Source of the DNA: Trichoplax adhaerens | Taxonomy: Eukaryota > Animalia > Placozoa | Assembly (NCBI RefSeq): GCF_000150275.1 | Contig: NW_002060952.1 | Span: 1,974,260 to 2,038,259 of the forward strand | Direction of reading: 5' to 3' | DNA length: 64,000 nt | In this document: piece after piece, positions 7,688 to 26,007 of the stretch | Layout of the letters: the number at the start of each line of letters is the position of its first letter | Position numbering within the stretch: the first letter of the stretch is position 1 | The notes under the pieces: generated by a model | Seen by the model: the letters and a program-made list of their open reading frames with translations, nothing else | Told to the model about the DNA's origin: nothing | Database searches by the model: none | Translations under genes and position numbers: made by a program

Positions 7688-10600
7688 ATGTCTACAGACA
7701 GCGATAATCAAGTAGAAATCGCCAAAAAAAGAAAGTTTCGACCCAGAAAGGCGTTGAAGAAATCCAAGAAAGCATTAGCCGGTGAAAACCTTCTGTTAAC
7801 ACTGACTATCATTGGTGTCTTAGTTGGCGTTTTAATCGGTTTTCTAGTTCGAATGGCTCATCCGGGCGAAGTAGCCATAAAGCTAGTTAATTTTCCTGGA
7901 GATCTTCTTATCAGAATGTTAAAAATGTTGATTTTACCATTAATCGTCTCCAGTCTTATAGCTGGTTTAGCTTCCCTAGACGCGGGTGCATCAGGCAAAA
8001 TGGGCCGTCGAGCTATTCTTTACTACTTTGGAACGACAGTTTTAGCAGTAGTTTTAGGTCTAGTGCTTGTTGTAGTTATCCATCCTGGTAAAACTAAAGC
8101 AGGCTTATCCAGTGAAAAGCAAGAACATATCAACACCTTAGATGCCTTTCTTGATCTTATAAGGTTAGCTTTATTCTTTTTATGAATTTGAATTGATACT
8201 GTAAAGTTAGAAAGTAATAAAAAAAACGATTTAGAGTCAGTAACAAGTAATGCCTGTAATGGAACCAAACTTTTGTAGCCAAGTATACATCTGGCATCTC
8301 TAAAATAATATACAAATTGTGCTTGCCATTAACCATATCGTTACATAAATACTTATGATCTAGTAATGATGGCCTTACCTTATGATGAACAAGTAGGCTA
8401 AAGTATTTCTTGATGCTGAAAATTTGAGAATTGCTTATGCGCAATTTAAATTACCTCCCTATGCGTTACAAGTGTCATACTTTACAATACTGTCAGTAAT
8501 AACTGTTAGTATATCATATAATTCCGTATGCCATTATTAGTTCTCTCCTAGCAGAAGTTGAATAATGAATGTTACCCTTCTATGCAATCAATATAGTTAC
8601 CACTTAGTCGCGCATTTTATGAGCCGCAATATCATTATTCATTATTCAGATGATTAAAACGGATAACCTAGCAAATCTGCTACTAGACTTTTCTTCAAGA
8701 ACTACAATCCGAGATATCGCATCTTATAACGTGGTACGAGTATCGTAATCTGGGATAATTTTAGTATAGCCTGTCTGGCCTTCAATATTATGTTGAATGA
8801 TTAGATGCAATTAATTATCTCCATAAATTATCGTGATATTATGTTTGCTAATTTATGCAAAGTATTTATTAATATTCAGTCATAAAATCAGAAAATCAGG
8901 TTCAGATTTTATGTTTACTTTAAAAATCTAAGCTATTAAGTAACAGTTACGCGTACATTTTAAAATAAAATACGCGTATACATATAAGCACAGAATGCAG
9001 ATTACAATACACTGCTGTACTATCGTATTAAAACAAAATTAGCAGCTGTTAAACAGCTGCTACTTGTACGCTAACTGTTAAGCTATAACTTTGTATCGAT
9101 TTACCAGACTTAAATATCCTTAAAATTAGAAGCATTTCTAAGGCATACTATTTAGATTACATATAGAAAATGCCACATTAGAAGTTATTTTATGATATCA
9201 AGTAAATGTGTTAAAAGCAAGTGTTCCATATATCTTGCGTGTAGAGTATACTGTATTGATGAATTTGTAAGCAGCAGCCATGCAACGAACTCACAAAAAC
9301 ATTTATATTTACCGTAAACTACAGCCAAACCAATATATAATTCACTATATTTCTTAATTTCTTAAAATTTAGAAATATGTTCCCTTCAAACTTAATACAA
9401 GCGTGTTTTGAAACGGTAAGGAAAATTTTATGCATTTATACCCTTACTCTACTCGTACGTTGATAATTATAATTAAACCGAGTACAATATCAGGTTTTGT
9501 ACCTTTTATGATACTATCAATTTCAAATTTCTTTAAAGTCTTTTAACGCAGACGCTACACTTTCCTTATTAGTGACAGCATTAAATGCAGTTTTTTTATG
9601 TACTATGATTATTGAATAAACATTAAGCATTCTCACCCAATCATCCCTTTGTAGCAAAAAACTGTGTACAAGGAAGTTAGGCATCCGGTTGCTGTTATAA
9701 CACATGATAACATCACTAATGCAACGCAAAGGGTCACAGTTTTGCCAACAATGATTAGCGAGATTTCGATCAACTCCGATAGTTCAAATATTACTAAAAA
9801 CATAACCGTGGCTAAATTTGAGCACGTTGGTGAAGAACACTTTGTAGACGGTATGAATGTTCTGGGTTTGGTAGTATTTTCAATCGCGTTTGGTATTACT
9901 ATGAGCAATATTGGAGAAGGAGGAGAACCCATAAAGCGGTTTTTCTTGTCCCTGAATGAAGTCGTTATGAAATTAGTAGGAATCGTTATGTGGTAAGAAA
10001 ACCTTACGAAAAAATTCAGTTTTGGTAATAAGTGCTAGGTGCCTATATTTTTAATAAAGTTTTGACTTTCCTACTCGATCAGGTATTCTCCTGTTGGTAT
10101 CATGTTTTTAATAGCGGGACAAATAATTAAGATGGATGATTTTGGTAAAGTTATGGGCTCTCTTGGCTTATATATGGTCACTGTTATACTGGGATTGTTA
10201 ATACATTCGATGGTTACACTACCTGCAATTTACTTTGCTGTCGTTCGTAAAAATCCCTTCATATACATGAAAGGTGTCCTACAGGCTTTAGTAACTGCAT
10301 TTGGTACTGCTTCCAGGTATAGTTTAAAATAAAATTCGCCAATCCTGTTAACTTTTTATTTTTGTAATTCATATTATTTCTGTGACAGTTCAGCGACGCT
10401 TCCAGTGACCTTCAGATGCTTAGAAAACAATCTAAACGTTGACAAACGAGTTACACGATTTGTACTTCCAATTGGTGCCACAGTTAATATGGATGGTACA
10501 GCCCTTTATGAAGCTGTTGCTTCAGTATTTATTGCTCAAGTAAATGGAATTACCCTTAATTTTGGACAACTCATAACAGTGAGGTAAGACAGAACTATAA

Positions 10601-11039
10601 GTATGACATTGGCATCAATGAATAATCAGATAATAAATAAATTTTAATTTTCCAAATTTTTCTGATTTATCCATTAAATTTGCTATTATGTTACAGTTTA
10701 ACGGCTACTCTAGCTGCAATTGGTGCTGCTGGTATACCACAAGCTGGAACAGTCACTATATTACTAGTTTTAACAGCGGTAGGCCTGCCAGCAGAAGATG
10801 TTTCACTGATTATGGCAATCGATTGGTTTCTTGATCGAATTCGCACAGCCGTAAACGTTCTTGGTGATGCCTATGGCACTGGTATCGTTTATCACTTATC
10901 AAAATCAGAATTGGCGGATGCAGATGCACGTGAAGAGGCGAAAGCTATAGAAGAAGGTAATTTTACAGAACAAAAAGAAACTGAGGATATAGCGTTGGAG
11001 ACAAAAAAAGCCTCGAATTCTAGCGAAAGCCAACTATAA
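7688..11039 (+). CDS. SLC1 family excitatory amino acid (Glu/Asp) transporter, paralog A, 6 exons
   Basis: Exons 7688-8163, 9373-9415, 9655-9992, 10083-10316, 10389-10583, 10697-11039. Motifs [84 protein letters not shown]. Confidence 0.95.
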
Positions 11040-13584
11040 TTATATGTTCAGTTATTCTCACTTTAACATGGGATCCACTAACTGAACGTAAGCCTACCAT
11101 GTAATTTTGTAGTTTATCTTCATACGTACTGTTTGTCATAAGTTTGTGATGTTTAGCTACATAAACATTTACCATAAATATTAGAGTATCCTCATAAGCT
11201 ACCTTTATCTTGTATGCTTCTTCGATTGTTATTTGCTTTGCGTGTTGAGATATTTGTTACATTCAATTCCAAATACAGCAACTGCCTTTATTGGCTCGAG
11301 CTATCTTAAAATTTTATTTGCACGTACGTATTTCAGAGAAACACCGTCTGGTAAGTTTATATTGCATCCACCATTTTCTTAAATATACGATAATCGTACA
11401 GCAAATCCCCAGACAATTTTGTATACAGTATTAAAGGAGAAGTACATCGACTGTTTATGAAGCTTCGAGAAGGCGACACGCAGAGCGGCCGCCTGTTAGG
11501 TTTTATTATTGTATGTGTGTATTAATTAATATACTCGTATGCTCCCATTACAAATGCCATAATTTTCGATATGTATTACGCAGCTACCTTATGAAAGTAA
11601 TAGTACTTAATGTATTGTGACTATTGTAGTAGCTCAAATACAATACATTCTTGTATCTAATTCTACCAGGAGCATACTGATATATAATAAATTTAGTAGT
11701 CAGCTTATTGCATTAATAACACATTTCAATCATTCATCAACTTGTAATAATTGCTTTAATTTCTAGCAGATATTTATACCAGCTATGTATCGTACTAAAT
11801 TTCACTTTTAAGTGTGAAGTCAAGTCTAATAAATCAAACTATTAAATTCAAGTAGTAATGCGTAAAGTTTCTAACGATATTCAAGCCGATATTTACGAAG
11901 ACAATGTAGTATTGCTTTCTTCATTTCATGAAATTGATACAGTAAGATGGCTACACTCCATACATAAGAGCCCATGCGAATAGTTTCATAACTTAACTGA
12001 GTCCTCACCGTAAATAATTCTATATCTAGGACTACACGTAAAATAGACATTATGCATGGTTAAATTCTGTACGCAATTATCGTTAATTTTGCATAAAACT
12101 TTCCGTCTTGCTCAGAATCTTCATAATTTGGTAAATACCTGTTACTAATCAGCTGCAGTCATGCGATTTGAAGCGCTTAAGAAACTAACAGGGAAGTTGA
12201 TGCCATTTAGTAGCATATACATTATTTATGATGTGACATTTAAAGTAATATGCGAATAAATCTACACCAAATCTGTTCTAGATTGAGAATTAATAAATTT
12301 TGAATATCCCAATAACTACCAGTAACTTCGATAATGACTTGGTTAGCTTAGTTGTGTAAGGCGTAATTCATGTATCTGGCATTGCAGCTAACAGTAAATT
12401 AAATTCAGAGCTATTCCAAAAACTATATCTCATCAATTTCAAGTCTGTCATGATAAAATCCCCCAAGTGAATTAAATTATCAATGGATAAAGTCTGCACT
12501 TAATAGTAAATTTATTAAATTCTTTTCATCAGTACAGTGAAGGATCGATCCATATGTATTAGACGTTACTACTATAAAAATGATATATCCAGAGTCCTAA
12601 TATACACCTATGATGCGACTCTAATTATAATATTAACTTATTAAAATTATAATTATTATATGGTACTACCACGTATTTATACGAACCGGTAGCTCTAGGT
12701 TGTATCGAACATTTACCGTAAGAGCGCCAGCATTTATCTATCTTGATACACATACGCGTATGCAAGATTTCTGTGTATGTTATATATTAGGGATAGAAGA
12801 ATTATTAGGCTTATCCCGTAAGCAAACGTAAGCAAACCAATCGAGTATAAGCTATACAGTATAAGAATAATATTGTAGAGCCTTATAATCGAATTGCAGG
12901 GTAATCGAAGTACGAATATACAGTATAAATATGCACAGATACATGGACATAAGCAACTTGTACCTTGATAGTTAAAAATCAACACACGTATATATTGAAA
13001 AATACCCGAGCGTTATCCCAAGAGAACAATATCATAGCAATTGCCGTAACATGAAAAAGGCATCGCAAATGAGCTTCATACCTATTTACACACATAATAT
13101 CGCTTATACTGTATGTATTACAGAAATATAAAGGGACGTATTATCGCAAGGCAAGGTACCCTGTTTGGTTAATACCTTATTATCAGACGTTTTTGCAGCA
13201 TGTGCATATCATATCAGCAATCAACAATTTACTATTTTTTACTTGCAATAGCTACATCATGTCTTTTCAATTTCGAGTGCATCCATGTCATTTGACTGCA
13301 AGTATATGAAGTTATAATACGGAATCCGTGTGTAATTTCAAGTAGCACCCGTTCAAGTACTGCCTTTCAACAAGTAATCTGTAGCTGCAAACAGTATAAA
13401 GCAAATAAAATAGATAGAACATAAACAGGAAATATTAACGAATGACTGTCCACTCTTCCTAGCAGATCTCTCTTTTTAAAAATACTATATTTACTATTTT
13501 CGAAAAATTTGGTCTACATGCATACGATAAGGTGCAACCATGATAACCTGCGTAAATGCTCACCCAGAGATGTTAAATAGGTTT

Positions 13585-14796
13585 TTACATTGTGAATCCT
13601 AGTCCCTGCATGATTTTCCGGTAATCTAAGCGCTCACGAATTAGACGGATTTCCTGCCCATTCACTAAAACCTCAGCTGCATAAGGGCGCAAGTTATACA
13701 AGGAACTCATTGAAGCGCAGTACGCACCAGCAGTTAAGATTGCTAACAGATCTCCCTCTTGTGGTAAAGCAATTTCGAGATTCTCACCAAATGTATCTGA
13801 AGATTCGCAAATATTTCCTACAACCGTGACTCTGCGCAAGGGTGCATCCGGATTGGAAATATTAATAATATGATGATAAGAGCCATACAAGGCAGGTCTA
13901 ATAATGTGGTTCATCCCCGAATCGGTGCCAATAAAAATTATTTCTCCGTTTTTCTTAATATTAGTCACCTTAACCAATAAGCAAGTTGATTCCGCTACTA
14001 AAAACTTTCCAGGTTCCACTATCATATTGATTTCTCTCCCATTAGATAAGGTAAATTCCTTTACGTACTTCTCAACACAATTAAAGAATTGCTTTATGCG
14101 GACTGGTTTAGAGTCAGGTTCATACATTACTCCAAAGCCCCCGCCAAGATCTATAAATTTTAAACTTTTAAAATTTGCAGCTATTTTAAAAATTTCATAC
14201 ACTGCACTCTCAAATACTTCAGCTGCATAGAAGCCGGAGCCTATGTGACAATGTACCCCAATTAATTGAAGGTGATATTTTCGTATAATTTGCTTGGCTT
14301 GCTCGATCTCCTCCAATAAGATACCAAATTTAGATTCTTTACCACCTGTTATCACCATTTTGGTCTCACCATCGCCGATACCGGGATTGAACCTAATCGA
14401 TACTTCTGCTCCATTGAATACAGCCCCAAAACGTTCTAATTCGGAAATGGACCCTATATTCGGTATGACACCTTCCGCGTGTACCTCTGCTAGTTCTCGA
14501 TCATCAGAATTATTACCAGTAAAGATAATTTGTTGGCTTTTAAAGCCACACTGTTTAGCTAGTTTTATCTCAAAGGGTGCTACTGCATCGATACCGTCAA
14601 TGCCTGCTGCCTTGAGCTCTCTAATGATATGAGGATTGTAATTTGCTTTCAAAGCATAATAGACCTTGGTATTTTTACCGGTTGCATCTTTAAGAATTTG
14701 CACTTTACGATGCAGAATACCGGAGTCTGTCACGAACACTGGCGTGCCATGCTTTTCAGTCACTCTTTGAGAAATTTCAAGACTAGGTTTATACAT
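13585..14796 (-). CDS. lysA: Diaminopimelate decarboxylase (fold-type III PLP enzyme), bacterial-type, intronless, 403 aa
   Basis: Single uninterrupted ORF with YALKAN (PLP lysine), ESKFG, HCHIGSG, DLGGGFG, EPGKFLVAES, GMNHIIRPALYGSYH, VVGNICESSD and AGAYCASMSSLYNLRP. RPALY and CESxD are typical of LysA rather than ornithine decarboxylase. Confidence 0.92.
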   Translation of the reverse strand: MYKPSLEISQRVTEKHGTPVFVTDSGILHRKVQILKDATGKNTKVYYALKANYNPHIIRELKAAGIDGIDAVAPFEIKLAKQCGFKSQQIIFTGNNSDDRELAEVHAEGVIPNIGSISELERFGAVFNGAEVSIRFNPGIGDGETKMVITGGKESKFGILLEEIEQAKQIIRKYHLQLIGVHCHIGSGFYAAEVFESAVYEIFKIAANFKSLKFIDLGGGFGVMYEPDSKPVRIKQFFNCVEKYVKEFTLSNGREINMIVEPGKFLVAESTCLLVKVTNIKKNGEIIFIGTDSGMNHIIRPALYGSYHHIINISNPDAPLRRVTVVGNICESSDTFGENLEIALPQEGDLLAILTAGAYCASMSSLYNLRPYAAEVLVNGQEIRLIRERLDYRKIMQGLGFTM

Positions 14797-14912
14797 GATT
14801 CACTAATCATGGCCAGTGTCCTTTAATAAAATATAAGCTCTTAATTATTCCTAATCGAAGGCTAAGAAGTACATTATTATTGTTAAACTACAGTATTACT
14901 TTAAAATACTAT

Positions 14913-14962
14913 ATTATTATTGTTATTATTATCATCATTATTATTATTATTATTATTTATTA
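14913..14962. repeat. (ATT)n microsatellite
   Basis: attattattgttattattatcatcattattattattattattatttattac immediately upstream of lysA; it produces the spurious poly-Ile ORF 14880..15107. Confidence 0.85.
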
Positions 14963-15219
14963 CCTCTACGACTATGGTACCATCAGCTGCACTTCAGCGC
15001 TTCTCTTTTATTTCCTTATTTCTGTTTTTAGTCATTTTAGCAGTCATCCTGTATTCAATATGCTGTCTTGTTGCTGCAAAGTAAAAAGCCGTGTTTACAG
15101 CTGGTAGAGTAGCAGATCAATGCGATAATTATTATTATTATTTTATTGTAGGCATGAGTTTCAGTTAAAGTTGTGGAATGATTGAAATCATCGGCGTTAA
15201 CGGAGTTTGAGCGAGCGGC

Positions 15220-18200
15220 TTTGTACTGTACAGTATAGTACAGTATAAAAGAATTTTCTCTTTGTTTTTATGATTAGTATCATAATACGGTACAGTACTC
15301 ATGGACTACTACAGTACAGTACAGTACTGTACTGTACAGTGTACTGTACAGTAGATCAATTGATGCAGTACAGTACTGTATCATTCCCGCGCAAAAAATA
15401 ACAATAGAATAAATAAACGGTAGCGCGTTGTGAACAGTTTAGGAGAAATGGCGTGGTAGAGAAATGTTCTGTAGTTATGGTGCAAAATTCAAGATGACGA
15501 CATTATTATTATTTTTAAATTACAGTACGTACAGTTATGGACCACTAGAAGAAAATCATTTGTACGGTATGACACCATGGGCCTCTAGAACAGCAGAGAG
15601 ATCCATTGTGACATGCACTGTACTGTAATAAAAGATGTATTTTTTTTTTTTCCTTCTGGAGGGTAAGGAAACTGTACTGTACTTATAGGAGGCATTTTAC
15701 TGTGCCGTACTTAAAGCTAGTTTAAAGTACTGGCATACGGGTATTTTTACTGGCCGTTCCAATTTGAACGGCAGATTCACTAGTTTAGGAGAATAGAAAG
15801 ATGTTATTCGAATAGTTAGGAAGAATGGTAGATGAAACTACAGAGATAAAAACTATTGTAAACTTTTAATGGACGAAAGTAAAGTTTATACAGTAGATGT
15901 ACTGTACACTCAGTGCTGTATTAATATTGTACCAGGACTACAGTAATTGTGTTTGGCAGCCCCTTACATCATCGTAACGCTCAACGGTTGCACATAAGTA
16001 CACTACCAATCAAAACTGGAGACTTGAGCCTTGGTATAAAAATCAACAATCCGGGTGTACGGTAGACGAATGTACACTTGTACAGTACTGTATCTATCTA
16101 TCTTGCTTTGTTCGATCTAAAGTGTACAAAGTACAAAGTGCAATCATACCATGCAATAGTACAATGGCCATAGTACATAAGATCACGCCCTAGCCATAAA
16201 TGATAATAACAGACGTTCCCGAAATGCAGTGTTTGCTAGACCACACTGTTTACTATTTTTTGGAAAGCGTGCTGCACAGTACCAATGGACATGTACTGTA
16301 CACTATACTGTACTGTACAGTACTGTACCTTCTTCCAGTTCTACAAAGCAGTGTAAGTATAAACTCGAATAAAATAACCTTTTATATCAATATTTGCATA
16401 ATACACGTGATATCCCATAGGCCGCATGATCTGCGGCATGCAGCTACTGCATTGCCTGCAATCGCAATCCAGCCATGATGCTTTACAAATCCTCAGTTTG
16501 TAATGAGAGTCGTCGATTTTAACGTCAATGCTATTGCATGTAATAAAGTACAGTATTATTTCTATTGCAGCTTACTTTATAACTTGAAACTATTGTTAAA
16601 TATTATTATTACAGTAATAAACTTACAACTTCTAGTTTACAGTATACCACGTAACTATACGCAGCTAGATCTCAAAGTGCAGACTCGCCTCCCTCCTAAA
16701 CCGAATCCACTTAGTCCTGGCGCCACTATCTTACTTTACTTATGATTACCGGGCCTCTCATTATTATAAAACCTACTTTCCTAAGTACAGTACATTACAG
16801 TATAACAATATTGGGCAGAGCTCACCGACGACAAGGACTGTACACTCAGTGTACAGTACAGTGTGTATCATAACATTTTGTCACTCACGTTTTACAAACC
16901 CTTGGTTGTACTATACTGTTACTGTCAGCGACAAACCGTACTGACTGACGGTACTTTGCGGTGTACTGTACTAAAAATCTTCGTACCCGAACACTAACCC
17001 GAACTCCTGTACAGTATTCTGTAGTACAGTACTGTACTGTACAGGAGACCATACGAAAATTATACCAAATTTATCTAATAAGGACTTGAAATTATAATGT
17101 CATTTACTGTAGTTTTAAACGGTGGGAAAGACTTATGAGACACCCTTTAGTACTGTACTGTATACTGTACTGTAGTACTGTAGTACAGATGTGTCATGAT
17201 CATAGAGTTAATCCCTTTCTCAGACAGACCGACTAGGCTCCATGTTCAGTTTTAGCGTCACTAAAACTGACCTGAAATGTGTGCGGTAGCGCTGGGCATC
17301 CAAAGTTTTTTTTTGCTATTAAATTTGAAAAGTTATCTGACCAGAAGTTAATAATACAAAAAGTAATTAATTTAGATTCTCACGGTTAATAAATTAGGCT
17401 ATTGAATTTAAATTGTTATTGGATTATTATACCGTATTACCTATTTATTGTACAGTATGTAACATTCTAATTCATGGTAATGAAGTAACTAAGTTTGGCG
17501 CTACCAGCATTTCAGGTGAGCCTACTGTAGTGACGCTAAAAAAAACTGCAACAACAGTAGAATCCGTCTGTCCGAGAAAGTGACGCGTCTGTACAGACAG
17601 TCCTATGTACAGTACAGTACAGTACTGTCGCAGCCATAGAGTTCAACAACGGACGCAGACATGTGCTCAATATCAGTACAGTACTGTACAGTACAGGGAA
17701 CAAGTAAACTCATTATTTGCTGTAATCAACAGATTGTACGCTACTACTGAAGATGCAATTGCAATAATTGCGATACGTATCTAATGCACTTGATCCGAAG
17801 GAAGTTGCAAAACACTATCGGCTACCGGCGAGATTTATGAAAGTGGCACATAGTCTTGACACTATACTGTACTGTAATTTGCCGTTAAAACTTCAGAAAA
17901 TGTGTGGGTAGTACAGTACAATACTGTACAGTGTACAGTACAGTACTGTAATCTGCCCTTCAAACTTTTCAGAAATGCTTGGACTGCGTGGAAGATAGTG
18001 GAGCATATGGATTGGATTGGATTTGATTGGTCATTGGGATTGATACCGCAGTTTGTACTGAACGGTTATTATTGCTGTACTTGTACAGTACAGTATACTG
18101 ACCGTCCTTAGTATCGTACGGTGTACAGTACATACAGTACAGTACACTGTACTGTATGCTTGCCAGCAAACAAAAGAAAATCAAAACATAAAGTACTGTA

Positions 18201-18310
18201 CACTGTACTATACACAAGTAGCAATTATAAACATTAACCGCCGTACTCACTAATTGGAATAAATAAATAAACAAAGCAAAGCATAGTACAGTACAGTACA
18301 GTACAAAGGT
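15220..18310. repeat. Extended cluster of (TACAG)n/(CTGTA)n pentamers and TACAGTACTGTA palindromes in the divergent lysA / EAAT-B intergenic region
   Basis: e.g. acagtacagtacagtactgtactgtacagtgtactgtacagta (~15310-15355), with further runs near 16290-16330, 17020-17045, 17150-17190, 17605-17700, 17910-17950 and 18120-18305. Confidence 0.85.
17212..17583. mobile_element. Non-autonomous foldback/MITE-like element (~370 bp) with long imperfect terminal inverted repeats
   Basis: Left tccctttctcagacagaccga versus the reverse complement of the right end tcactttctcggacagacgga. Internal arms also pair: cagttttagcgtcacta / tagtgacgctaaaaaaaactg and cctgaaatg..ggtagcgc / gcgctaccagcatttcagg. The core is AT-rich and no clear target-site duplication is visible. 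Confidence 0.7.
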
Positions 18311-18536
18311 TGAAACGGTATAAAGGAAGCTGCGTGCCGCATTTAGAGTCAGTGCAACTTCCTCGTGGATCATTGACGTTTACACTTCACAGTTTGCTGC
18401 TGTTTCATTTCAGGAGAGAGTGGTCTCTTTGCTAACAAAACAGCGTTGCCGCGAAAATTTCCCTGCATTGATTTCGATACGACTGAACAGTTTTTCCTTC
18501 GTAGTGGATACCTGAATCGCTTTCTACGATACCAAA

Positions 18537-21500
18537 ATGCCTTCATCAGAAGTTGATCAAGTAGCCGATAATGCTATCGTTAAAAAACCAAGAAAATTTC
18601 GACCTAAGAAGGTCATGAAAACCTCCAAAAGAGTTTTGGGAGGAGACAATCTTTTATTGAGTTTAACCATTCTTGGTGTCTTCCTTGGCGTTTTAATTGG
18701 CTTCCTTGTTCGTACGGCACATCCAAGCCAAACTGCAATCAAATTGATTAATTTCCCTGGTGATATTTTAATGAGAATGCTTAAAATGTTGATTCTACCT
18801 TTGATTGTTTCCAGCTTAATTGCTGGTCTGGCTTCACTGGATGCTGGCTCTTCCGGTAAAATGGGTCGCCGTGCTATCTTTTACTACTTTGGTACGACCA
18901 TCTTAGCTGTCATCTTGGGTCTGGTACTTGTCGTTGTTATTCATCCTGGCAAAACGAAGGAAGGTTTATCCAGCAACAGGCAACAACACGTCAATACTTT
19001 AGATGCTTTCCTGGATTTGATTAGGTAAAAACATGTATTGATTATTTTTCTCAATGTGTATTGCATTGGGACAGCATGCTGTTCAATCAACATAGTTCAT
19101 AGGCGTTTCATCTCTTATACTATCTATACTCGTACGCAGTACTGTAATCATAGTTTCCCTTCGCTCCAGCTTTACAGAAAACATGAATATTCCAATGTTA
19201 TCATATCGTTTTAATTTAACTTCAACCGAGGGAGATTACAGTAGAAATCAACTGTAGTAAATTACCTGATTGAATAAATGCACGGTACAATTATGATACA
19301 CACTGTATCATAAGGAGGTGGAAAGAAAATTGTATGAAGGGTGGTGATTTCTTTTTACTCCATAATTACGAAACCCTCCGGTCTCATCTGCAGGATATCA
19401 ATTATAATTACCGATGTTGCACAATACAGTACGTAAATTTCCTTATCGCACCTTTATCGCCCTTCACCCCATTCAATGGCCCTTCGCTCTTTCGCATTTT
19501 GTGCAAGGTTTACGTTTTAAATAATAATTCCGCTTTAGTATTTGTTAGCCGACACTTTTTAATTATACATTATGTGATTTCGTTGCAATGTAGTGTACAT
19601 GTTGTATTTTTCGTTTGGTGTTAATGAAATAATGTTCGGAATGCACAGGCATAGCGGGAATTACAGGGTGGGCTGTATAGCTTTGTATAAAAATGCGCTA
19701 TCAATTAACTGAACTGTGTCCGTACGATATGCTATTTTATCCATTCTTGTTTTGATAAAAATTCCGCTAAATTGCTAATTTAGGTAGCATACGATAGCGC
19801 GATGTACTGTAAATACAGTAATGTTGTGTCGGAAACGACTATGGGGTAAGTACTGTACTGTACTGTACTGTACAACTCACGGGTGATCATTGCAGGTATT
19901 TGTCGTGAGCTTTCGATGTTTATTTAACAGAACCACGGTGATAAGGCTCATGGATAAGTGAATATTTAGATGTTGTTCTAAAAGTTTGTTTCCCATGAAG
20001 CTGAGTCAAAGAAGTACTGCTATACCATTAACTGTGCCTCCTCCGCAGCACAGTAAAGAATCTATTTGTAAAAATGCTTTAATTGTTCTGTCTATTCGAT
20101 AGAAAAGTCAACTCCCCCCACATACCCTTGAAAGTCGTTCGAGCGGAATTACATACGAGTAGAATGAAATATTTGTTAGATGTACTGTTCTATTCTGCAA
20201 AGCGCCGAAACTAGGAAAAGTGAGTTTAAACAGTGTTAACTGATACCATTTCTACATCGAAATTTACACGGAAGAAAATATTTCTTATAAGCATTTTAAG
20301 AACTATTTTATCGTCTTTATTGTTCAATCGTAAGCGTAATGGCCATGACAACAATCGAAATTAATTGAAATATTTAATGTTCTCAATTCGTTCACTTACT
20401 CTGTCATGCACCCTTATAACGCATCTCTATAAAACGTAAAGTTTGACAGTATCGTAACATTTACGAGCTTAAATCTATAATTTAATTTTCCAATTTGGAG
20501 GGAGTCTCTTTGGTGTTAGCCATTGACTTAAGCCTAAATCATTGGATATACGCATATAATAGGTGCACTACTCGAAAAGGAAAATTATCTCTCTTTCACA
20601 TATTACACACAACCAGCAGTAGTCAATTTAGTTCAATGTTACACAGCGATACTCTCATACTTGTACAACAGAGAGGGAACAAAATATAGCTGCTAATTTA
20701 TAGACAACCTTTTGAAGTTCAATGCTCTACTGCATTTATTAACCTTTGAAATAAAGTAGACGAGCGCATCTCGTCTTCTTTCCAACATTGCAGCGTTGCC
20801 AAATGATTGTTATTGTTTAAACGCCTACGCATAGCATCTGTACGCTGTTATCATTATCCAATACGAAGAATCACGCAACTCTTTGTGCCAGCCATTACTT
20901 CACCTGCTGATCCACACTGTGCAATAATATGAAATTGACAGTACAGTTATTTTCAAAATATTTCTCTTACAAGTACCTAATAATGTCAACGCTGCTATAA
21001 ACTTATATCTATATACTACTTGATACCATATGGTGGTCAGCATTGCGATCATACAATGTTGTACTATAGTACAGATATTTGGCCTCTGTGTAGAAAAGAA
21101 TTTTGAATTCTTGTTACAGTTTAAAAACGAAAACTAATTTCGAACTACGGACTTCACCAAATCTCGAATAATTTGTTTGATATTGCCGCCATTTATTTCA
21201 ATTTTTAAACATCCCCTGGTTGTTATTTTACTTGATCAAAAAAGTTCGATAGACTACTTACTAACACCTACACATGCTACAATATGGACGTACTATGCCG
21301 TACTAGGCACAGTCAATGACCAATTCACTATTGTATAGTTTTGATTTCACGTTATTAGAAAGTCTACTGTAGTAATAGAAAACAAAAGCGTAACAATATA
21401 TGCATGCATCTTTTATTTTAAATTAATAGTACTGCACTTACAGACGGTTGATAGGGGCACAAAAGATGGTATACCCTTATGTCTAGCAGTATTTTGCTTT

Positions 21501-24500
21501 GTTTACTACTGGAATTGTTTGATCTAATTAACAGCATTGTACGTTTAAAATTCGTTAATTCGTTATCGTTAAAATCAAGTTAAAAATGCTTCAAGATTCC
21601 TCTTCAAATGACAAAACAGTTTACCACGTTGAACACTAGTAGTAAATTGTAACCTTATTAATTTTTAAAGACTGCTACATAATATACCGCTTCAATTGTA
21701 ATATGCGTAGGTATCATCGTAAGTTTACTGTACTGTACATACCTAAAGTGGAAGATTTCATTTCTCTGCAAGGAATATTTTGTAGTGACCATAAGAGAAA
21801 TGGAAACTTAGCAGAAAAGCAGCGGTAGATTTTACTTCCGTATGATACCCTAAAATCTCTTAATGTTGTCGATTTTCCTATGCATACATACACGATACTT
21901 CAGTACATTGGCCTCCTTATCATGACTGAATATTCTCTCGTACATGACGAACATTGAAATATTTTTCTATAAAAGAAATTGCCCGCTATACGTAAATAAG
22001 TTTCCGTTTCTACCGCATTTTTAACTTGACATATTATAATTATATTTCAAGAGACGGCAATGGCTACAAATAAGTACGTTCTAGTTTGACGACGACATTC
22101 TTGATAATCTAATATCAATAATGACTTGATAGCTTTGCAAAGAAGTGATCAAAGCAATGAGCAAAATTTGGAAAGGCATTTATAACCTACATAAACTGTA
22201 GCTTTGTCAATATTAGAATATATTGTATTATAGACTTAAAGTATAGTGTACAGTAGCATTTGTATTACAAGTATATCGGCAACTAACGATTATATTTACC
22301 ATCGCATGTGCTTACTTATAAGGTAGCTATTGTCAGTGTTTGCTTGGACGACGTTGTACTGTATGTTCAATTATGATTGAATTGTTAAACTTTTATGACA
22401 TCATTGATTAGTTATGGGCTAGCACTATCCTAATATAAACAATTTACATTCCCACGACCGATTGATCAGCCGTCGTACACGCCTCCTTTTACATTCAATC
22501 GATCTTTATTATTTTAAACAATAGCGGTAAGTAGCAATGAACACAAACGGCGCGGACAACTCATTCTGTCTACTGTATTCATAAATTTACGAAACTGTCC
22601 TCAGGTAATTAACTACGGCAAATTTCACTGTATTGTTTATTATTGTTTCAACAACGTACATTCACTACTCGCGCCGTAAGACATCGGATAAACGATGCTA
22701 TAATACATTAGCATATGAGCATTATATTATCATGTTATCCATGAAAAACATCGATGAAGGGCCCATCCTATCTCTTTACCGGGAGGATCTTTTTATTGTT
22801 GACTAAAAACTGACAGTTGAAAGGAGGGAACAAAGTGTGTACAGAAATCTTACATATACCAAGTATCTATTTATTTACCTTTAAATTTTCTTATGCTCAG
22901 GATAAAGAAATAAAGAAACTTGTTAGTGTTAGTTTTTATCAGTTTATAGTGAAATCAATGTGCACTATGCAACTTGAAATGAACCCTGTTCGATGGCATC
23001 ACAGTGCCAGAGTAATCCGTATAAAAATTACTATGCCATATTATGGAAGCAGGATCAGACATGAGAATAATAACGGTCCATTTAGAATCTACAGCTAATA
23101 GTACAGCATGATCAATTGATCATTTACGTAAATATGACATTGTTACTTATGAAACTCTGTTATCATTTGCTATTTGGCTAATAATTAATTAATACATATG
23201 GGTAATGCCAACAACGTATCACATTGTACAATATGATACTCTTTGGATTTGTATACGTTTACCTTCAGGCGAAATGCAATACACATTGTATCTTCGAAAT
23301 AGAGTTGTCCCTCGTTTGCTGAAAGTATCTTATGTATTCAACGTATTACGATTTCAGCAATTTCTTAACATCATCATAACTAAAGTGATGATTCGTTATA
23401 CTATAGGTAATTGTACAGTACATCAGTTGTGATACTTCTGCTGGTGCAACTTATAAAAATACTACCATTCGACAGCAAGTCTTCAATAGCGCACGACCTT
23501 GAGATAGTAATTAGTAAAATCAACTTTGCATACAACCTTATGCTGGAAAAATGAAATCAATAATATATAATTATGAAAATTATACCTGTAACATCATCTC
23601 TAACAATTTAGTGAATAATTGTAGATGTAATCAATAAATATCATCAACGCGATAGATTACAGTAATTAATATTTTCATAATGGTACATTATTCGCTTTAT
23701 ATAAATCTCCAAGTGCTAGTAACAACTGTAAATTTAGGTGATTGATTAAATGTCAATATTTCACTATACTAGGGATACATATTCGCATTATATGATTAAT
23801 GCATAACAAACAATTATTAGAAGGACTACTTCTGTTAGTCTACACTCTTTCCCTATCTCGGCCGATATATATTAGAAATCTACCACAATCTGCTATTAGG
23901 AACAATTGTTTTATTATTATAAGGCCACATTCTAAAGTAATATCTATCGTTGATTATATTATTTATCTACGCTGATCACAACTTCTGTTATTATTGTAAT
24001 AATAACCGACTGTTTTGTTGATTTATTTTAACTTAGAAACATGTTCCCGCAAAATTTGGTACAAGCTTGCTTCCAACAGGTATTTCAAATTTAAATATGA
24101 TAGTGTAGCTATCGTATCACATAATTTTCAAGTAAACAAAGGCTACAAGCATCTATAATACTTATAAATACGAAATAATTGGTAAAAGTAGTTACACAAC
24201 GACTGCGTAGATCTAGTTCCACAGTTATCGTGCGCTGCATTAGATAGTTTAAAATCAGTTGTGATGATGCTTCCATTGTTGTATTTATGTGTAATAAATT
24301 CAATATGAATTAATCAAAGTTTCTATAATTCACCAATATTATTTATATACTACGGAAATAAAAACAACTTTTATTTAAATTTACCTTATAAGTGTATCTT
24401 TTTCGAACACAGAGAAGTATATAAAATTTGGCATCGCTATTAATAACGCGCATACTTATGAATTATTGTATAGATACACGACATATTCCTGTATATAGTA

Positions 24501-26007
24501 ATTGTCACGATCAGAATATTGCTGCAAAGAAAAGTCATTTAAGGCGGCTTTTACCTCTTAACCTAACTTTACGTGATTTAAATTTATTTAGCAAAAAACC
24601 ATTTTCAAGACCGTACGGGTAGCTGAAAAAGTGGTGATACATAACGCTACAACAAATACAACAATTACTTATACCGTTATGCCAACTATGATTAGCGAAA
24701 TACCCGTTACTGGTACTCCAAACATCTCTAATGTCACTTTGCCAAAATTCACCAATATTGGATCAATCCAGTACGTAAGCGGTATGAATGTATTGGGATT
24801 GGTGGTTTTCTCAATTGCCTTCGGCATTACAATGAGCCGCATCGGAGAAGCTGGTAAACCAATTCAAAATTTCTTCTTGTCATTAAATGAAGTTGTTATG
24901 CGATTAGTCGGATTGGTAATGTGGTAAGTAAAACTTAAATAATTCTCATAATTTAATATTTACTATATCCCAGCAATAATTACTAAAGAAAATGAAATCT
25001 TTAAAAATTTCACTCCATAGGTATTCTCCTATTGGTATTATGTTCTTAATCGCCGGTAAAATTATTGAAATGGATGACTTCGGAAAGGTTATGGGCTCTC
25101 TTGGTTTGTATATGGCGACAGTATTAATTGGTTTATTTATCCACTCTTTGGTTACACTGCCACTCATCTACTTCATATTCGTCCGCAAGAACCCTTTTGT
25201 CTTCACTAAAGGTGTTTTGCAAGCGTTAGTAACAGCTTTCGGTACTGCATCAAGGTATGCATTTTATTCGCGCCTACATTTATCGTTACTCATAAGTCTA
25301 CAATATGTACATATATATGTATACTAATTATTGTAATATCTATTAGTTCGGCAACCCTACCAGTAACATTTAAATGTTTGGAAGATAATTTGCATATCGA
25401 CAAGCGTGTAACTCGCTTTGTTCTGCCTATTGGAGCTACTATTAATATGGATGGCACCGCATTATACGAAGCCGTAGCCTCGGTATTCATTGCTCAAGTA
25501 AATGGTATCGCTCTCAACTTTGGTCAACTTATTACCGTCAGGTAAATATTTAATTTAGCACTTGTCTCGCTATTTACACTAATAAGTAATGACGAAGCTG
25601 TGTTATGTTGTGAGAACCTCCAAATCCCTTACTTTTATTTACATCATTGTTAAAGCTTAACCGCTACGCTGGCTTCAATTGGCGCTGCTGGTATTCCCCA
25701 GGCTGGCCTGGTCACCATGTTGCTGGTACTAACTGCGGTTGGTTTACCAACTGAAGATATAACCTTGATTTATGCTATTGACTGGTTCCTCGATCGCGTT
25801 CGTACGGCTATTAATGTTCTTGGTGATGCTTATGGAACTGGTATTGTGCATAAGCTATCAATAGCTGAATTAGATGATGCTGATGCTCGTGAACAAGCTA
25901 GGAAATTGGAAGAAGGTGAATTCGAAGATGATAAAAAAGATGAAAATGGCTACGAGCGCTCTGTTCGTGCTAGTGGAAATGAAAATCGTTTAGAAAGTCA
26001 ATTGTAA
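18537..26007 (+). CDS. SLC1 family excitatory amino acid (Glu/Asp) transporter, paralog B, 6 exons
   Basis: Exons 18537-19024, 24037-24079, 24592-24923, 25021-25254, 25347-25541, 25656-26007, with the same intron positions and phases as paralog A. Motifs [51 protein letters not shown]. Confidence 0.95.

Follow-up and report, generated by a model that had tools for sequence, protein, structure and literature searches.

According to textbook teaching, animals cannot synthesise lysine. The whitefly Bemisia tabaci has acquired dapB, dapF and lysA horizontally and similar genes are present in other sap feeders (PMC8659303; PMC4607527). The whitefly genes rescue E. coli auxotrophs, and whiteflies in which lysA is silenced have less lysine, lower fecundity and lower symbiont titres (Bao et al., 2021; PMC8659303). 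In the placozoan Trichoplax adhaerens, Driscoll et al. (2013; PMC3641634) reported 12 transfer candidates which include dapF and murA; lysA is not among them. For Trichoplax sp. H2, one sentence in Kamm et al. (2019; Sci Rep 9:17561, PMC6879607) states that bacterial dapF and lysA are present in the nuclear genome and that lysA may contribute to lysine synthesis. The existence of the transferred lysA is already known and the value of the present work therefore lies in the details, i.e. in where the gene came from and how old it is, how its transcript is built and how far it duplicates symbiont genes. New compared to Kamm et al. (2019) are the T. adhaerens copy, a donor that is not the symbiont, the different origin of dapF, a transcript with a probable 5' intron and the host-like composition.

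The lysA locus of T. adhaerens shares several traits with these systems. As in the whitefly, bacterial enzymes for terminal steps of the diaminopimelate (DAP) route to lysine are encoded in the nucleus of an animal that houses intracellular bacteria including Rickettsiales. However, Portiera and Rickettsia depend on the whitefly genes to complete the pathway; in Trichoplax, lysA and dapF are retained by both symbionts. Furthermore, the whitefly is a sap feeder on a lysine-poor diet while Trichoplax, a marine non-bilaterian, grazes on bacteria and algae and digests them, and its lysA is known here from sequence and RNA. The dapF and murA transfers of Driscoll et al. (2013) reside in the same host genome and likewise are intronless bacterial envelope or lysine-pathway genes on large eukaryotic scaffolds that stem from the same broad donor order. 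In contrast to dapF, which has relatives of 75-87% identity, lysA has none above 62% and no remnants of donor neighbour genes. Compared with Rickettsiales-like alphaproteobacterial LysA (TIGR01048; solved: 2p3e, 1knw and 2yxx), the Trichoplax protein agrees in length, domains, start and catalytic residues, but its gene sits in an animal chromosome, has host composition, a probably spliced leader and a long 3' UTR, and is not part of an operon.

Chromosomal location and integration of lysA

The window analysed here is a stretch of 64,000 nucleotides of T. adhaerens DNA. Within it, lysA is located about 2 Mb into the large scaffold C1405, between two genes for SLC1/EAAT transporters and in opposite orientation to both (Table 1). 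The exon ORFs of these neighbours encode transporter motifs, e.g. AGIPQAG. The transcript of the first one extends to about position 11825 (RNA contigs end at 11823-11830), and the second gene extends past 24796 as its H2 gene model overruns the end of the examined locus. Two types of repeats are found nearby: an (AAT)n run spans approximately 14905-14967, and repeats of the TACAG type occupy approximately 15230-15360. A sequence-only reading of this DNA had described host DNA with intron-containing EAAT genes and repeats on both sides of lysA and had noted the lack of bacterial operon neighbours. Both statements hold. When all ORFs from 14 donor-type loci were compared with positions 11000-18600 by tblastn with lysA masked, no remnant of donor-type neighbour genes was detected in the flanks and the matches were noise alone (best E 0.004, at most 23.5 bits).

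Table 1. Features of the lysA locus (positions in the window)
Feature	Position	Strand	Description and evidence
First SLC1/EAAT transporter gene	7689..11041 (approx.)	plus	Several exons; PF00375 gene model in the collinear H2 contig; exon ORFs
3' UTR of lysA	12490..13584	minus	About 1.0-1.1 kb; coverage by RNA contigs reaches from the CDS to 12558 in X19 and to 12655 in X20; 12490 estimated
lysA CDS	13585..14796	minus	ORF, 403 codons plus stop, intron-free; meso-diaminopimelate decarboxylase, PLP-dependent, assigned by protein families (see text)
5' leader part of the coding exon	14797..14820	minus	24 bases; in-frame stops TAG and TGA; out-of-frame upstream ATG
Probable spliceosomal 5'-leader intron	14821..14963	minus	143 bases, AT-rich, contains (AAT)n; AG/GTAATA donor, TTATTAAAG/G acceptor
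Non-coding 5' exon, minimum extent	14964..15225	minus	X20 record 20 (14968-15225), X19 record 15 (15001-15091)
Second SLC1/EAAT paralogue	18523..24796 (approx.)	plus	Several exons; PF00375 gene model; exon ORFs

The sequence-only reading had named the two junctions, the read depth and the gene order in related species as points at which horizontal transfer could be checked, and all of them speak for integration. Contig NOWV01000058.1 from the independent assembly of Trichoplax sp. H2 is collinear with window positions 3603-24808 at 99.04% identity, carries the same two SDF neighbours around lysA and has both junctions in common with the T. adhaerens assembly. A DNA contig of 6235 bases from a third data set (run X4) covers 10800-15298 and bridges both junctions. 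In run X1, word depth is 82.6 for the gene and 83.4 for the flank. Hence we conclude that lysA is physically integrated in the host chromosome.

The H2 protein is annotated at NCBI as RDD42246.1 and differs from the protein encoded in the window by one residue (R100Q). No LysA labelled T. adhaerens was found in the protein collection. The T. adhaerens protein set apparently lacks the gene, and expression atlases that rely on this annotation thus probably do not include it.

LysA is most likely a meso-diaminopimelate decarboxylase

The complete LysA reading frame with its catalytic motifs, which had been proposed from the nucleotides, was recovered at exactly the same position and is borne out by family models. 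The 403-residue protein scored 368.2 bits with TIGR01048, the lysA equivalog model (cut-off 297.9). This is the sole family above its own cut-off, while the models for ODC, ADC, carboxynorspermidine and D-Orn/D-Lys decarboxylases stayed far under theirs. Pfam assigned PF02784 to residues 29-268 (2.7e-49) and PF00278 to residues 216-357 (6.3e-21). These are the two domains of the Orn/DAP/Arg decarboxylase family of fold-type III PLP decarboxylases, and the two-domain LysA layout, with a PLP-binding barrel at the N-terminus and a sheet domain at the C-terminus, is present. In a PDB search, the top matches were bacterial DAP decarboxylases (2p3e, 5.6e-64; 1knw, 3.8e-63), followed by plant LysA (about 1e-54; 187 vs 220 bits), D-Orn/Lys decarboxylases (1e-23) and ODC (about 1e-13 to 1e-14). 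A vertical eukaryotic or an ODC-type origin was rejected on the scores of the family models and the PDB search.

All 100 invariant columns of an alignment of 20 LysA sequences, the H2 orthologue among them, are kept in Trichoplax LysA, including K50, H184, GGGFG 218-222, E261, R300, Y304, C330-E331 and Y359. In TmDAPDC, the PLP-binding lysine and the residues in contact with PLP are K46, D65, H179, S182, E246 and Y343, and the substrate DAP is selected at the distal site by R249, R285 and E315, the counterpart in ODC and ADC being Asp (PMC8277567). Mapped by motif and spacing, not by superposition of structures, the counterparts at the PLP site are K50 (YALKAN), D70, H184 and S187 (HCHIGS), E261 (EPGK) and Y359 (GAY). 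All are invariant in the alignment except D70, which is D or E. At the distal site, R300 and E331 (in NICES) are present, and R249 of the motif EPGR is replaced by K264, a conservative change. As K264 is common to all 20 members of the clade, free-living-type MAGs and the symbiont included, it does not reflect decay specific to the host. Given that the PLP-binding residues and, apart from the change to K264, the DAP-binding residues are retained, the protein most likely decarboxylates free meso-DAP to L-lysine and would do so as a homodimer. LysA starts at the position typical of bacterial LysA and a signal or targeting extension is absent, and it is therefore probably cytosolic.

Trichoplax lysA stems from a donor other than the present symbiont

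Phylogenetic analysis placed Trichoplax LysA inside bacterial LysA. In a careful maximum likelihood tree calculated for a subset of 38 rows, in which plant and algal LysA were not included and the topology of which agrees with that of a quick tree, the protein was sister to 11 alphaproteobacterial MAG LysA sequences (support 98/96) and the LysA of the symbiont fell within the Midichloriaceae (100/100). The nearest MAG proteins are 59-62% identical (about 61%), and the stem that separates the Trichoplax protein from its bacterial sister group has a length of 0.44 changes per site. No eukaryotic sequences besides Trichoplax occurred among the best 120 protein matches. The protein collection, which apparently is without proteins from placozoan read sets, yielded no match of intermediate identity (62% to 99%). 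Taken together, two assemblies, the bridging DNA contig, equal depth, a spliced transcript, the nesting within bacteria and the host-like composition make horizontal transfer of a bacterial lysA into the animal chromosome, as first suspected from the intron-free frame in an animal locus, well supported.

The position in the tree points to a relative of uncultured Rickettsiales-like alphaproteobacteria, whose genomes measure about 1 Mb, as the donor. An origin from the present Midichloriaceae symbiont was rejected: host and symbiont LysA share only 52-54% identity and belong to separate clades, and a union of host LysA with the Midichloriaceae was rejected by an AU test (p = 0.009) of a grouping chosen after inspection of the quick tree.

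The gene is transcribed into a eukaryotic type of mRNA

Evidence on RNA came from assembled contigs of two metatranscriptome runs with random-primed RNA, X19 and X20. Contigs extend over 12558-14822 while the spacer at 11946-12518 is bare. A single piece (X20 record 18) links 12655-14019. The only AATAAA on the minus strand of the scanned 3' region is located at 12516-12511, near the end of RNA coverage.

RNA contigs from both runs cease matching at 14822, whereas DNA contigs continue through this position. Record 20 of X20 connects 14776-14822 with 14968-15225, and the letter count is consistent with a junction 14964 to 14820 with canonical GT..AG ends. The intron stretch is retained in the H2 DNA assembly. 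Supported by one low-depth RNA contig and the same break point in the second run, the leader intron is probably real. The sequence-only reading had called the gene intronless. This is correct for the coding sequence, but with the 143-base intron at 14821-14963 the gene as a whole probably is not.

The upstream ATG in the leader part of the coding exon opens a uORF of 16 codons that overlaps the lysA start codon. The non-coding 5' exon contributes five more upstream ATGs, which brings the whole leader to six, and none of its frames continues into LysA. The overlapping uORF and the six upstream ATGs could result in poor translation. Exons 1 and 2 were joined in silico to list these upstream ATGs. 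An N-terminal extension through the spliced leader is precluded by the in-frame stops immediately 5' of the lysA ATG. We conclude that lysA is transcribed and that its transcript has features of a eukaryotic mRNA.

Base composition and selective constraint

GC and GC3 of lysA are 0.394 and 0.347, compared to 0.394 and 0.329 for the EAAT exons of the host and 0.257 and 0.118 for the symbiont lysA. The gene is fully ameliorated to a host-like composition, which implies that it has long been resident in the host. The coding sequence is the only part that is still recognisably bacterial.

Between H1 and H2, lysA differs by one substitution in 1212 bases, while 7.3 would be expected from the flanks (Poisson P = 0.006). 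This sole substitution is non-synonymous (R100Q) and with a single change dN/dS is uninformative. Across the runs, at least 10 SNP sites occur among the differences listed and are split into 5 synonymous and 5 non-synonymous ones; for these ten sites pN/pS is about 0.28 (binomial P 0.048 for the synonymous excess). These data provide weak evidence for purifying selection in the host lineage.

A second nuclear gene, dapF, and the DAP pathway of the symbionts

The search for further dap genes that had been suggested along with the transfer revealed an intact nuclear dapF on scaffold C1412, separate from the lysA scaffold, which the sequence-only reading had missed. The closest bacterial relatives of this dapF are 75-87% identical. 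In the genomes that contain the nearest relatives of LysA, DapF is only 31-34% identical to the nuclear DapF. As the relatives of nuclear dapF differ from the donor group of LysA, the two consecutive steps stem from two separate acquisitions. About 2-3 kb separate dapF and lysA in the nearest MAG genomes (if the contigs of both searches are the same), whereas the Trichoplax genes reside on different scaffolds and differ in origin. Judged from these sequences, nuclear dapF and lysA would furnish the two terminal reactions of the DAP pathway, each from its own donor, and the transfer of dapF looks much younger than that of lysA. We tentatively propose, as a scenario somewhat short of an even chance, that placozoans assembled a two-step end of lysine synthesis by two independent transfers, an old one of lysA from an unsampled Rickettsiales-like donor and then a much younger one of dapF. 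Searches of the nuclear part of the assembly for dapA, dapB, dapD and dapE came up empty, which would make the host reliant on an outside source of DAP.

The same assembly contains a contig (C701) with the lysA of the Midichloriaceae symbiont itself, 96% identical to the LysA of the H2 symbiont. Other small symbiont contigs carry dapA and dapF (C290) or dapB and dapA (C885). Published tables list LysA as well as DapF for both H2 symbionts; the published metaproteome tables examined are confined to proteins of the symbionts. As both symbionts retain lysA, the host copy fills no gap in them. The sequence-only reading had envisaged a pathway split between the host and a microbe lacking lysA. Transfer of lysA and the assignment of the enzyme stand, while the premise of a lysA-less symbiont fails and the split pathway itself is an inferred one.

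Proposed role of the host enzyme and alternative explanations

According to these findings, the horizontally acquired bacterial lysA, which came from a Rickettsiales-like donor, is a resident and expressed nuclear gene of T. adhaerens and Trichoplax sp. H2, and we consider it likely that it serves to make lysine from meso-DAP. The gene is transcribed from host DNA; in its mRNA a non-coding 5' exon is probably spliced to the coding exon, and the 3' UTR is about 1 kb long. Cytosolic LysA homodimers would convert free meso-DAP to L-lysine and CO2, and the separately gained nuclear DapF would supply the preceding step. LL- and meso-DAP that is leaked by the intracellular symbionts or freed from digested bacterial walls would be the likely substrates from which the host would obtain lysine. 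Presence and integration of the gene, its bacterial ancestry, its transcription and the conservation of residues are shown by the data above; we infer the enzyme activity, the cytosolic location and the source of DAP, as well as a role in host lysine supply or a nutritional benefit.

The gene could also be real and transcribed and have its role in the management of bacteria, an explanation to which we assign a rather low probability. Free DAP would then be removed with DapF equilibrating the isomers and lysine as a by-product, either limiting a peptidoglycan precursor of the symbionts or clearing DAP from digested bacteria. Such a role agrees with the complete terminal steps of both symbionts, which leave no gap to fill, and with the absence of the earlier DAP pathway genes from the host. 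However, LysA has no signal or targeting extension, whereas the Midichloriaceae symbiont reportedly resides in the ER lumen of fibre cells. The idea that host dapF and murA could restrict symbiont growth has been put forward before (Driscoll et al., 2013; PMC3641634), but in the tested parallel, the whitefly, the host lysA raises lysine and supports the symbionts (PMC8659303).

Even less probable is a neutral passenger, that is, an old insertion that stays open and is transcribed at background level without giving rise to a useful protein. The leader rich in uORFs would fit such a passenger; H1 and H2 have diverged too little for dN/dS to be estimated properly, and their lone substitution is the non-synonymous R100Q. 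On the other hand, despite a stem branch of 0.44 changes per site all columns invariant in the family are kept and the frame of 403 codons is open. The fully ameliorated composition implies long residence, substitutions are rarer than in the flanks (P = 0.006) and pN/pS amounts to about 0.28. In addition, a probable intron and a long 3' UTR were acquired, and the adjacent step, dapF, was gained by a second, independent acquisition. Contamination or a chimeric assembly, with bacterial reads misjoined into a host scaffold, retains practically no probability even though the assembly does hold the small symbiont contigs C701, C290 and C885: it is ruled out by junctions shared between assemblies of two different lineages, the bridging short-read contig from a third study and the equal depth of gene and flank, and is also at odds with an identity of merely 52-54% to the symbiont copy, the host-like composition and the spliced RNA contig.

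Implications for placozoan biology

If the two enzymes work, Trichoplax would offer a tractable case of a host enzyme that is redundant with those of its symbionts. The selective reason would then have to be sought elsewhere, e.g. in the salvage of cell-wall DAP from food or in symbiont control. Annotation of lysA would let existing single-cell data show the cell type in which it is expressed. A working pair of DapF and LysA would also mean that bacterial gene capture for amino acid supply is not confined to sap-feeding insects, in a host that belongs to one of the earliest-branching animal lineages. Should the tentative scenario of two independent transfers be true, a non-bilaterian animal would be able to make the 'essential' amino acid lysine from bacterial LL- or meso-DAP of symbionts or digested prey. 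This would be convergent with whiteflies and mealybugs, yet in a host whose symbionts need no complementation.

Integration of lysA in the animal chromosome

On five lines of evidence, lysA is really within the animal's DNA. The window belongs to scaffold C1405 of the T. adhaerens assembly (105.6 Mb in total), about 2 Mb into it, and its stretch 3603-24808 is collinear, at 99.04% identity, with contig NOWV01000058.1 of Trichoplax sp. H2 (GCA_003344405.1). The gene arrangement is the same in H2, namely two SDF/EAAT genes with lysA between them on the other strand. EAAT exons are plainly visible in the window's own sequence, in line with the host flanks that the sequence-only reading had described on both sides of lysA. 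Junctions and read depth agree: a DNA contig of 6235 bases from a separate study's run is unbroken across 10800-15298, and in another run gene contig and flank have equal word depth (82.6 and 83.4). Mis-assembled symbiont reads are ruled out as the source of the nuclear gene, since the symbiont's own lysA stands on C701, a 2.2-kb contig of the same assembly, and its product is merely 54% identical to the nuclear copy.

The flanking genes are tandem SLC1/EAAT paralogues whose first exons are very similar and share a PRKFRPKK stretch and a second one of 23 residues. Compared with the H2 contig, the window is most divergent at 16603-17602, within the spacer separating lysA from the second EAAT gene (23 substitutions and 30 gap columns per 1 kb; elsewhere about 6 substitutions per kb). 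TACAG/TACTG-type blocks interrupt the DNA contigs in every short-read run, and there summed contig depth reaches about 29,650 (run X1) and 18,144 (run X4) with hundreds of false joints; this very high depth marks the motif as spread genome-wide.

Features in the window and in the T. adhaerens assembly (G000)
Feature	Location	Strand	Remarks
lysA CDS	window 13585-14796	minus	uninterrupted ORF, 403 codons
SLC1/EAAT paralogue, first	window 7689-11041	plus	lysA between the two, opposite strand
SLC1/EAAT paralogue, second	window 18523-24796+	plus	
TACAG/TACTG-type microsatellite blocks	window 15230-15360 and about 16300-16330		
Nuclear dapF	G000:C1412:3473059-3473871 (L004:1483-2295)		intact ORF, 270 aa
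Symbiont lysA	G000:C701:3-920 (L002)		96% identical to LysA of 'Rickettsiales endosymbiont of Trichoplax sp. H2'
Symbiont dapB, then dapA	G000:C885 (L007/L008)		
Symbiont end of dapA, then dapF	G000:C290 (L003)		

Identity of the encoded enzyme

The complete LysA ORF of 403 amino acids seen in the sequence-only reading was confirmed by the ORF itself, its domains, profile score, structure matches and conserved residues. The Orn/DAP/Arg decarboxylase family's two domains are both present, and the NCBIfam LysA equivalog TIGR01048 matches with 368.2 bits (cut-off 297.9), all sister families staying far under their own cut-offs. The closest solved structures are bacterial DAP decarboxylases (2p3e at 5.6e-64, 1knw at 3.8e-63), with plant LysA, D-ornithine/D-lysine decarboxylases and ornithine decarboxylases well behind. 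In an alignment of 20 sequences including the nearest relatives, Trichoplax LysA keeps 100 of 100 invariant columns. The residues described for Thermotoga DAPDC (K46, H179, S182, E246, R285, E315 and Y343; PMC8277567) map by motif to K50, H184, S187, E261, R300, E331 and Y359, so that the catalytic motifs noted earlier are indeed kept. The sole departure, K264 in place of the distal-site R249, is common to every bacterial member of the clade. The window's LysA and the H2 protein RDD42246.1 ('Diaminopimelate decarboxylase [Trichoplax sp. H2]') are identical save for one residue, R100Q. At the level of sequence, assignment as a DAP decarboxylase is secure.

Transcript structure and constraint

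The gene is transcribed. Assembled contigs, which form the transcript evidence in every run, cover 12558-14822 in two random-primed metatranscriptome runs (X19, X20). The RNA signal is not carried-over DNA, because these runs have no contigs in the neighbouring spacer 11946-12518 and almost none in 15384-15765. A single RNA contig joins 12655 to 14019, giving a 3' UTR of at least 930 bases; the only AATAAA on the lysA strand lies at 12516-12511. Both runs lose their match at 14822, while DNA contigs continue past it, and one X20 contig (record 20) resumes after 14822 at 14968-15225. Placed on the sequence, the splice junction runs from 14964 to 14820 and removes 143 bases, with donor AG|GTAATA and acceptor TTATTAAAG|G. 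The gene described as lacking introns is intronless in its CDS and has probably gained an intron in its 5' leader. None of the six upstream ATGs in the leader reaches LysA in frame without a stop, which leaves no N-terminal extension. Since the start also aligns with that of bacterial LysA proteins, the enzyme is predicted to be cytosolic.

Constraint on the CDS is suggestive, not strong. T. adhaerens and H2 differ by 1 substitution where 7.3 are predicted from the flanks (Poisson P = 0.006). Ten variable sites across four runs comprise 5 synonymous and 5 non-synonymous changes (266 and 943 sites, respectively; pN/pS about 0.28, binomial P = 0.048); each of the five replacements is at a variable column.

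Donor and age of the transfer

The proposed horizontal transfer of a bacterial lysA is real, as integration, tree and transcription attest, and the gene is expressed. The best non-Trichoplax matches, 59-62% identical, belong to MAGs of 'Rickettsiales bacterium' and of uncultured alphaproteobacteria whose genomes measure about 0.9-1.3 Mb, and Midichloriaceae LysA, including those of the Trichoplax symbiont and Aquarickettsia, are 50-54% identical. A careful ML tree of 38 rows pairs the two Trichoplax sequences, which have a stem of 0.44 changes per site, with a sister clade formed by 11 of these MAG sequences (98/96), and the symbiont LysA falls within the Midichloriaceae (100/100); a quick tree of 67 rows agrees. 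The log-likelihood falls by 18 units when Trichoplax and Midichloriaceae are forced together (AU p = 0.009, for a group picked after the quick tree was seen). The flanks hold no trace of donor-type neighbour genes, in line with the earlier remark that bacterial operon genes are missing nearby. In GC and GC3, lysA (0.394 and 0.347) matches the adjacent EAAT exons (0.394 and 0.329) and is far from symbiont lysA (0.257 and 0.118). Taken together, tree, AU test, lack of donor neighbours and host-like composition point to a transfer that is old and whose donor belonged to another lineage than the present symbiont.

The rest of the DAP pathway

Apart from lysA, the only DAP-pathway gene found in the assembly's nuclear part was dapF. 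A search of the assembly placed dapA and dapB on small symbiont contigs only, did not find dapD and gave only weak M20-peptidase matches to the dapE model. Nuclear DapF is 100% identical to TRIADDRAFT_54386 of T. adhaerens, and its bacterial relatives (75-87% identical) share a conserved gene order of M20 peptidase, small ORF, dapF, radical-SAM gene and gpsA. With symbiont DapF on C290 it shares only 30% identity. Because DapF in the genomes holding the nearest LysA relatives is merely 31-34% identical to it, these two consecutive host enzymes trace back to separate donors, and their acquisitions were probably also apart in time. In the MAGs nearest in LysA (loci L012 and L013; genomes G002 and G003), dapF apparently lies about 2-3 kb from lysA, assuming that contig numbering matches; despite this closeness, Trichoplax dapF does not come from that lineage.

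The sequence-only reading had envisaged a symbiont without lysA, and this did not stand. Contigs C701, C290 and C885 are small Midichloriaceae symbiont contigs within the T. adhaerens assembly, the first carrying lysA. Grellia pegs 289-291 have the same order as C885/C290, dapB-dapA-dapF (PMC6784892 supplement), published transcriptome tables credit Grellia as well as Ruthmannia with a DAP decarboxylase and a DAP epimerase, and the H2 'Panama' symbiont was described as lysine-capable (Kamm et al. 2019, PMC6879607). As the T. adhaerens symbiont contig and both H2 symbionts have their own enzymes, host LysA is redundant with them.

Proposed role and relation to known systems

LysA, as a cytosolic homodimeric PLP enzyme, most likely converts free meso-DAP to L-lysine, and nuclear DapF would supply it starting from LL-DAP. 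LL-DAP is a biosynthetic intermediate and not a Gram-negative wall component; because the host kept DapF, LL-DAP would be part of the available pool. Being unable to make DAP itself, the host must obtain this substrate from bacteria. DAP may leak from intracellular symbionts or be released on digestion of bacterial walls; Trichoplax feeds by grazing biofilms and possesses a lysozyme that cleaves peptidoglycan (PMC12855814). Redundancy with the symbionts' enzymes leaves room for a role in symbiont control or for neutral persistence as rival readings; lysine formation as the physiological role is inferred. Functionally, the whitefly offers the closest parallel: E. coli auxotrophs are rescued by the dapB, dapF and lysA that it gained horizontally, and when its lysA is silenced, lysine, fecundity and symbiont titres all fall (PMC8659303).

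The finding as such is already known, the lysA transfer having been published by Kamm et al. 2019 (PMC6879607), who place bacterial dapF and lysA in the nuclear genome of H2. No LysA labelled T. adhaerens occurred among the protein-collection matches or among the members of the H2 protein's 90% cluster; DapF, unlike LysA, has a T. adhaerens record. The gene thus seems to be missing from the 2008 gene set, and atlases that use this annotation probably lack it too. Lack of a protein model may be why Driscoll et al. 2013 (PMC3641634) give dapF and murA and not lysA. New here are the T. adhaerens copy with its spliced leader and ameliorated composition, a non-symbiont donor, independent donors of dapF and lysA, and redundancy with both symbionts.
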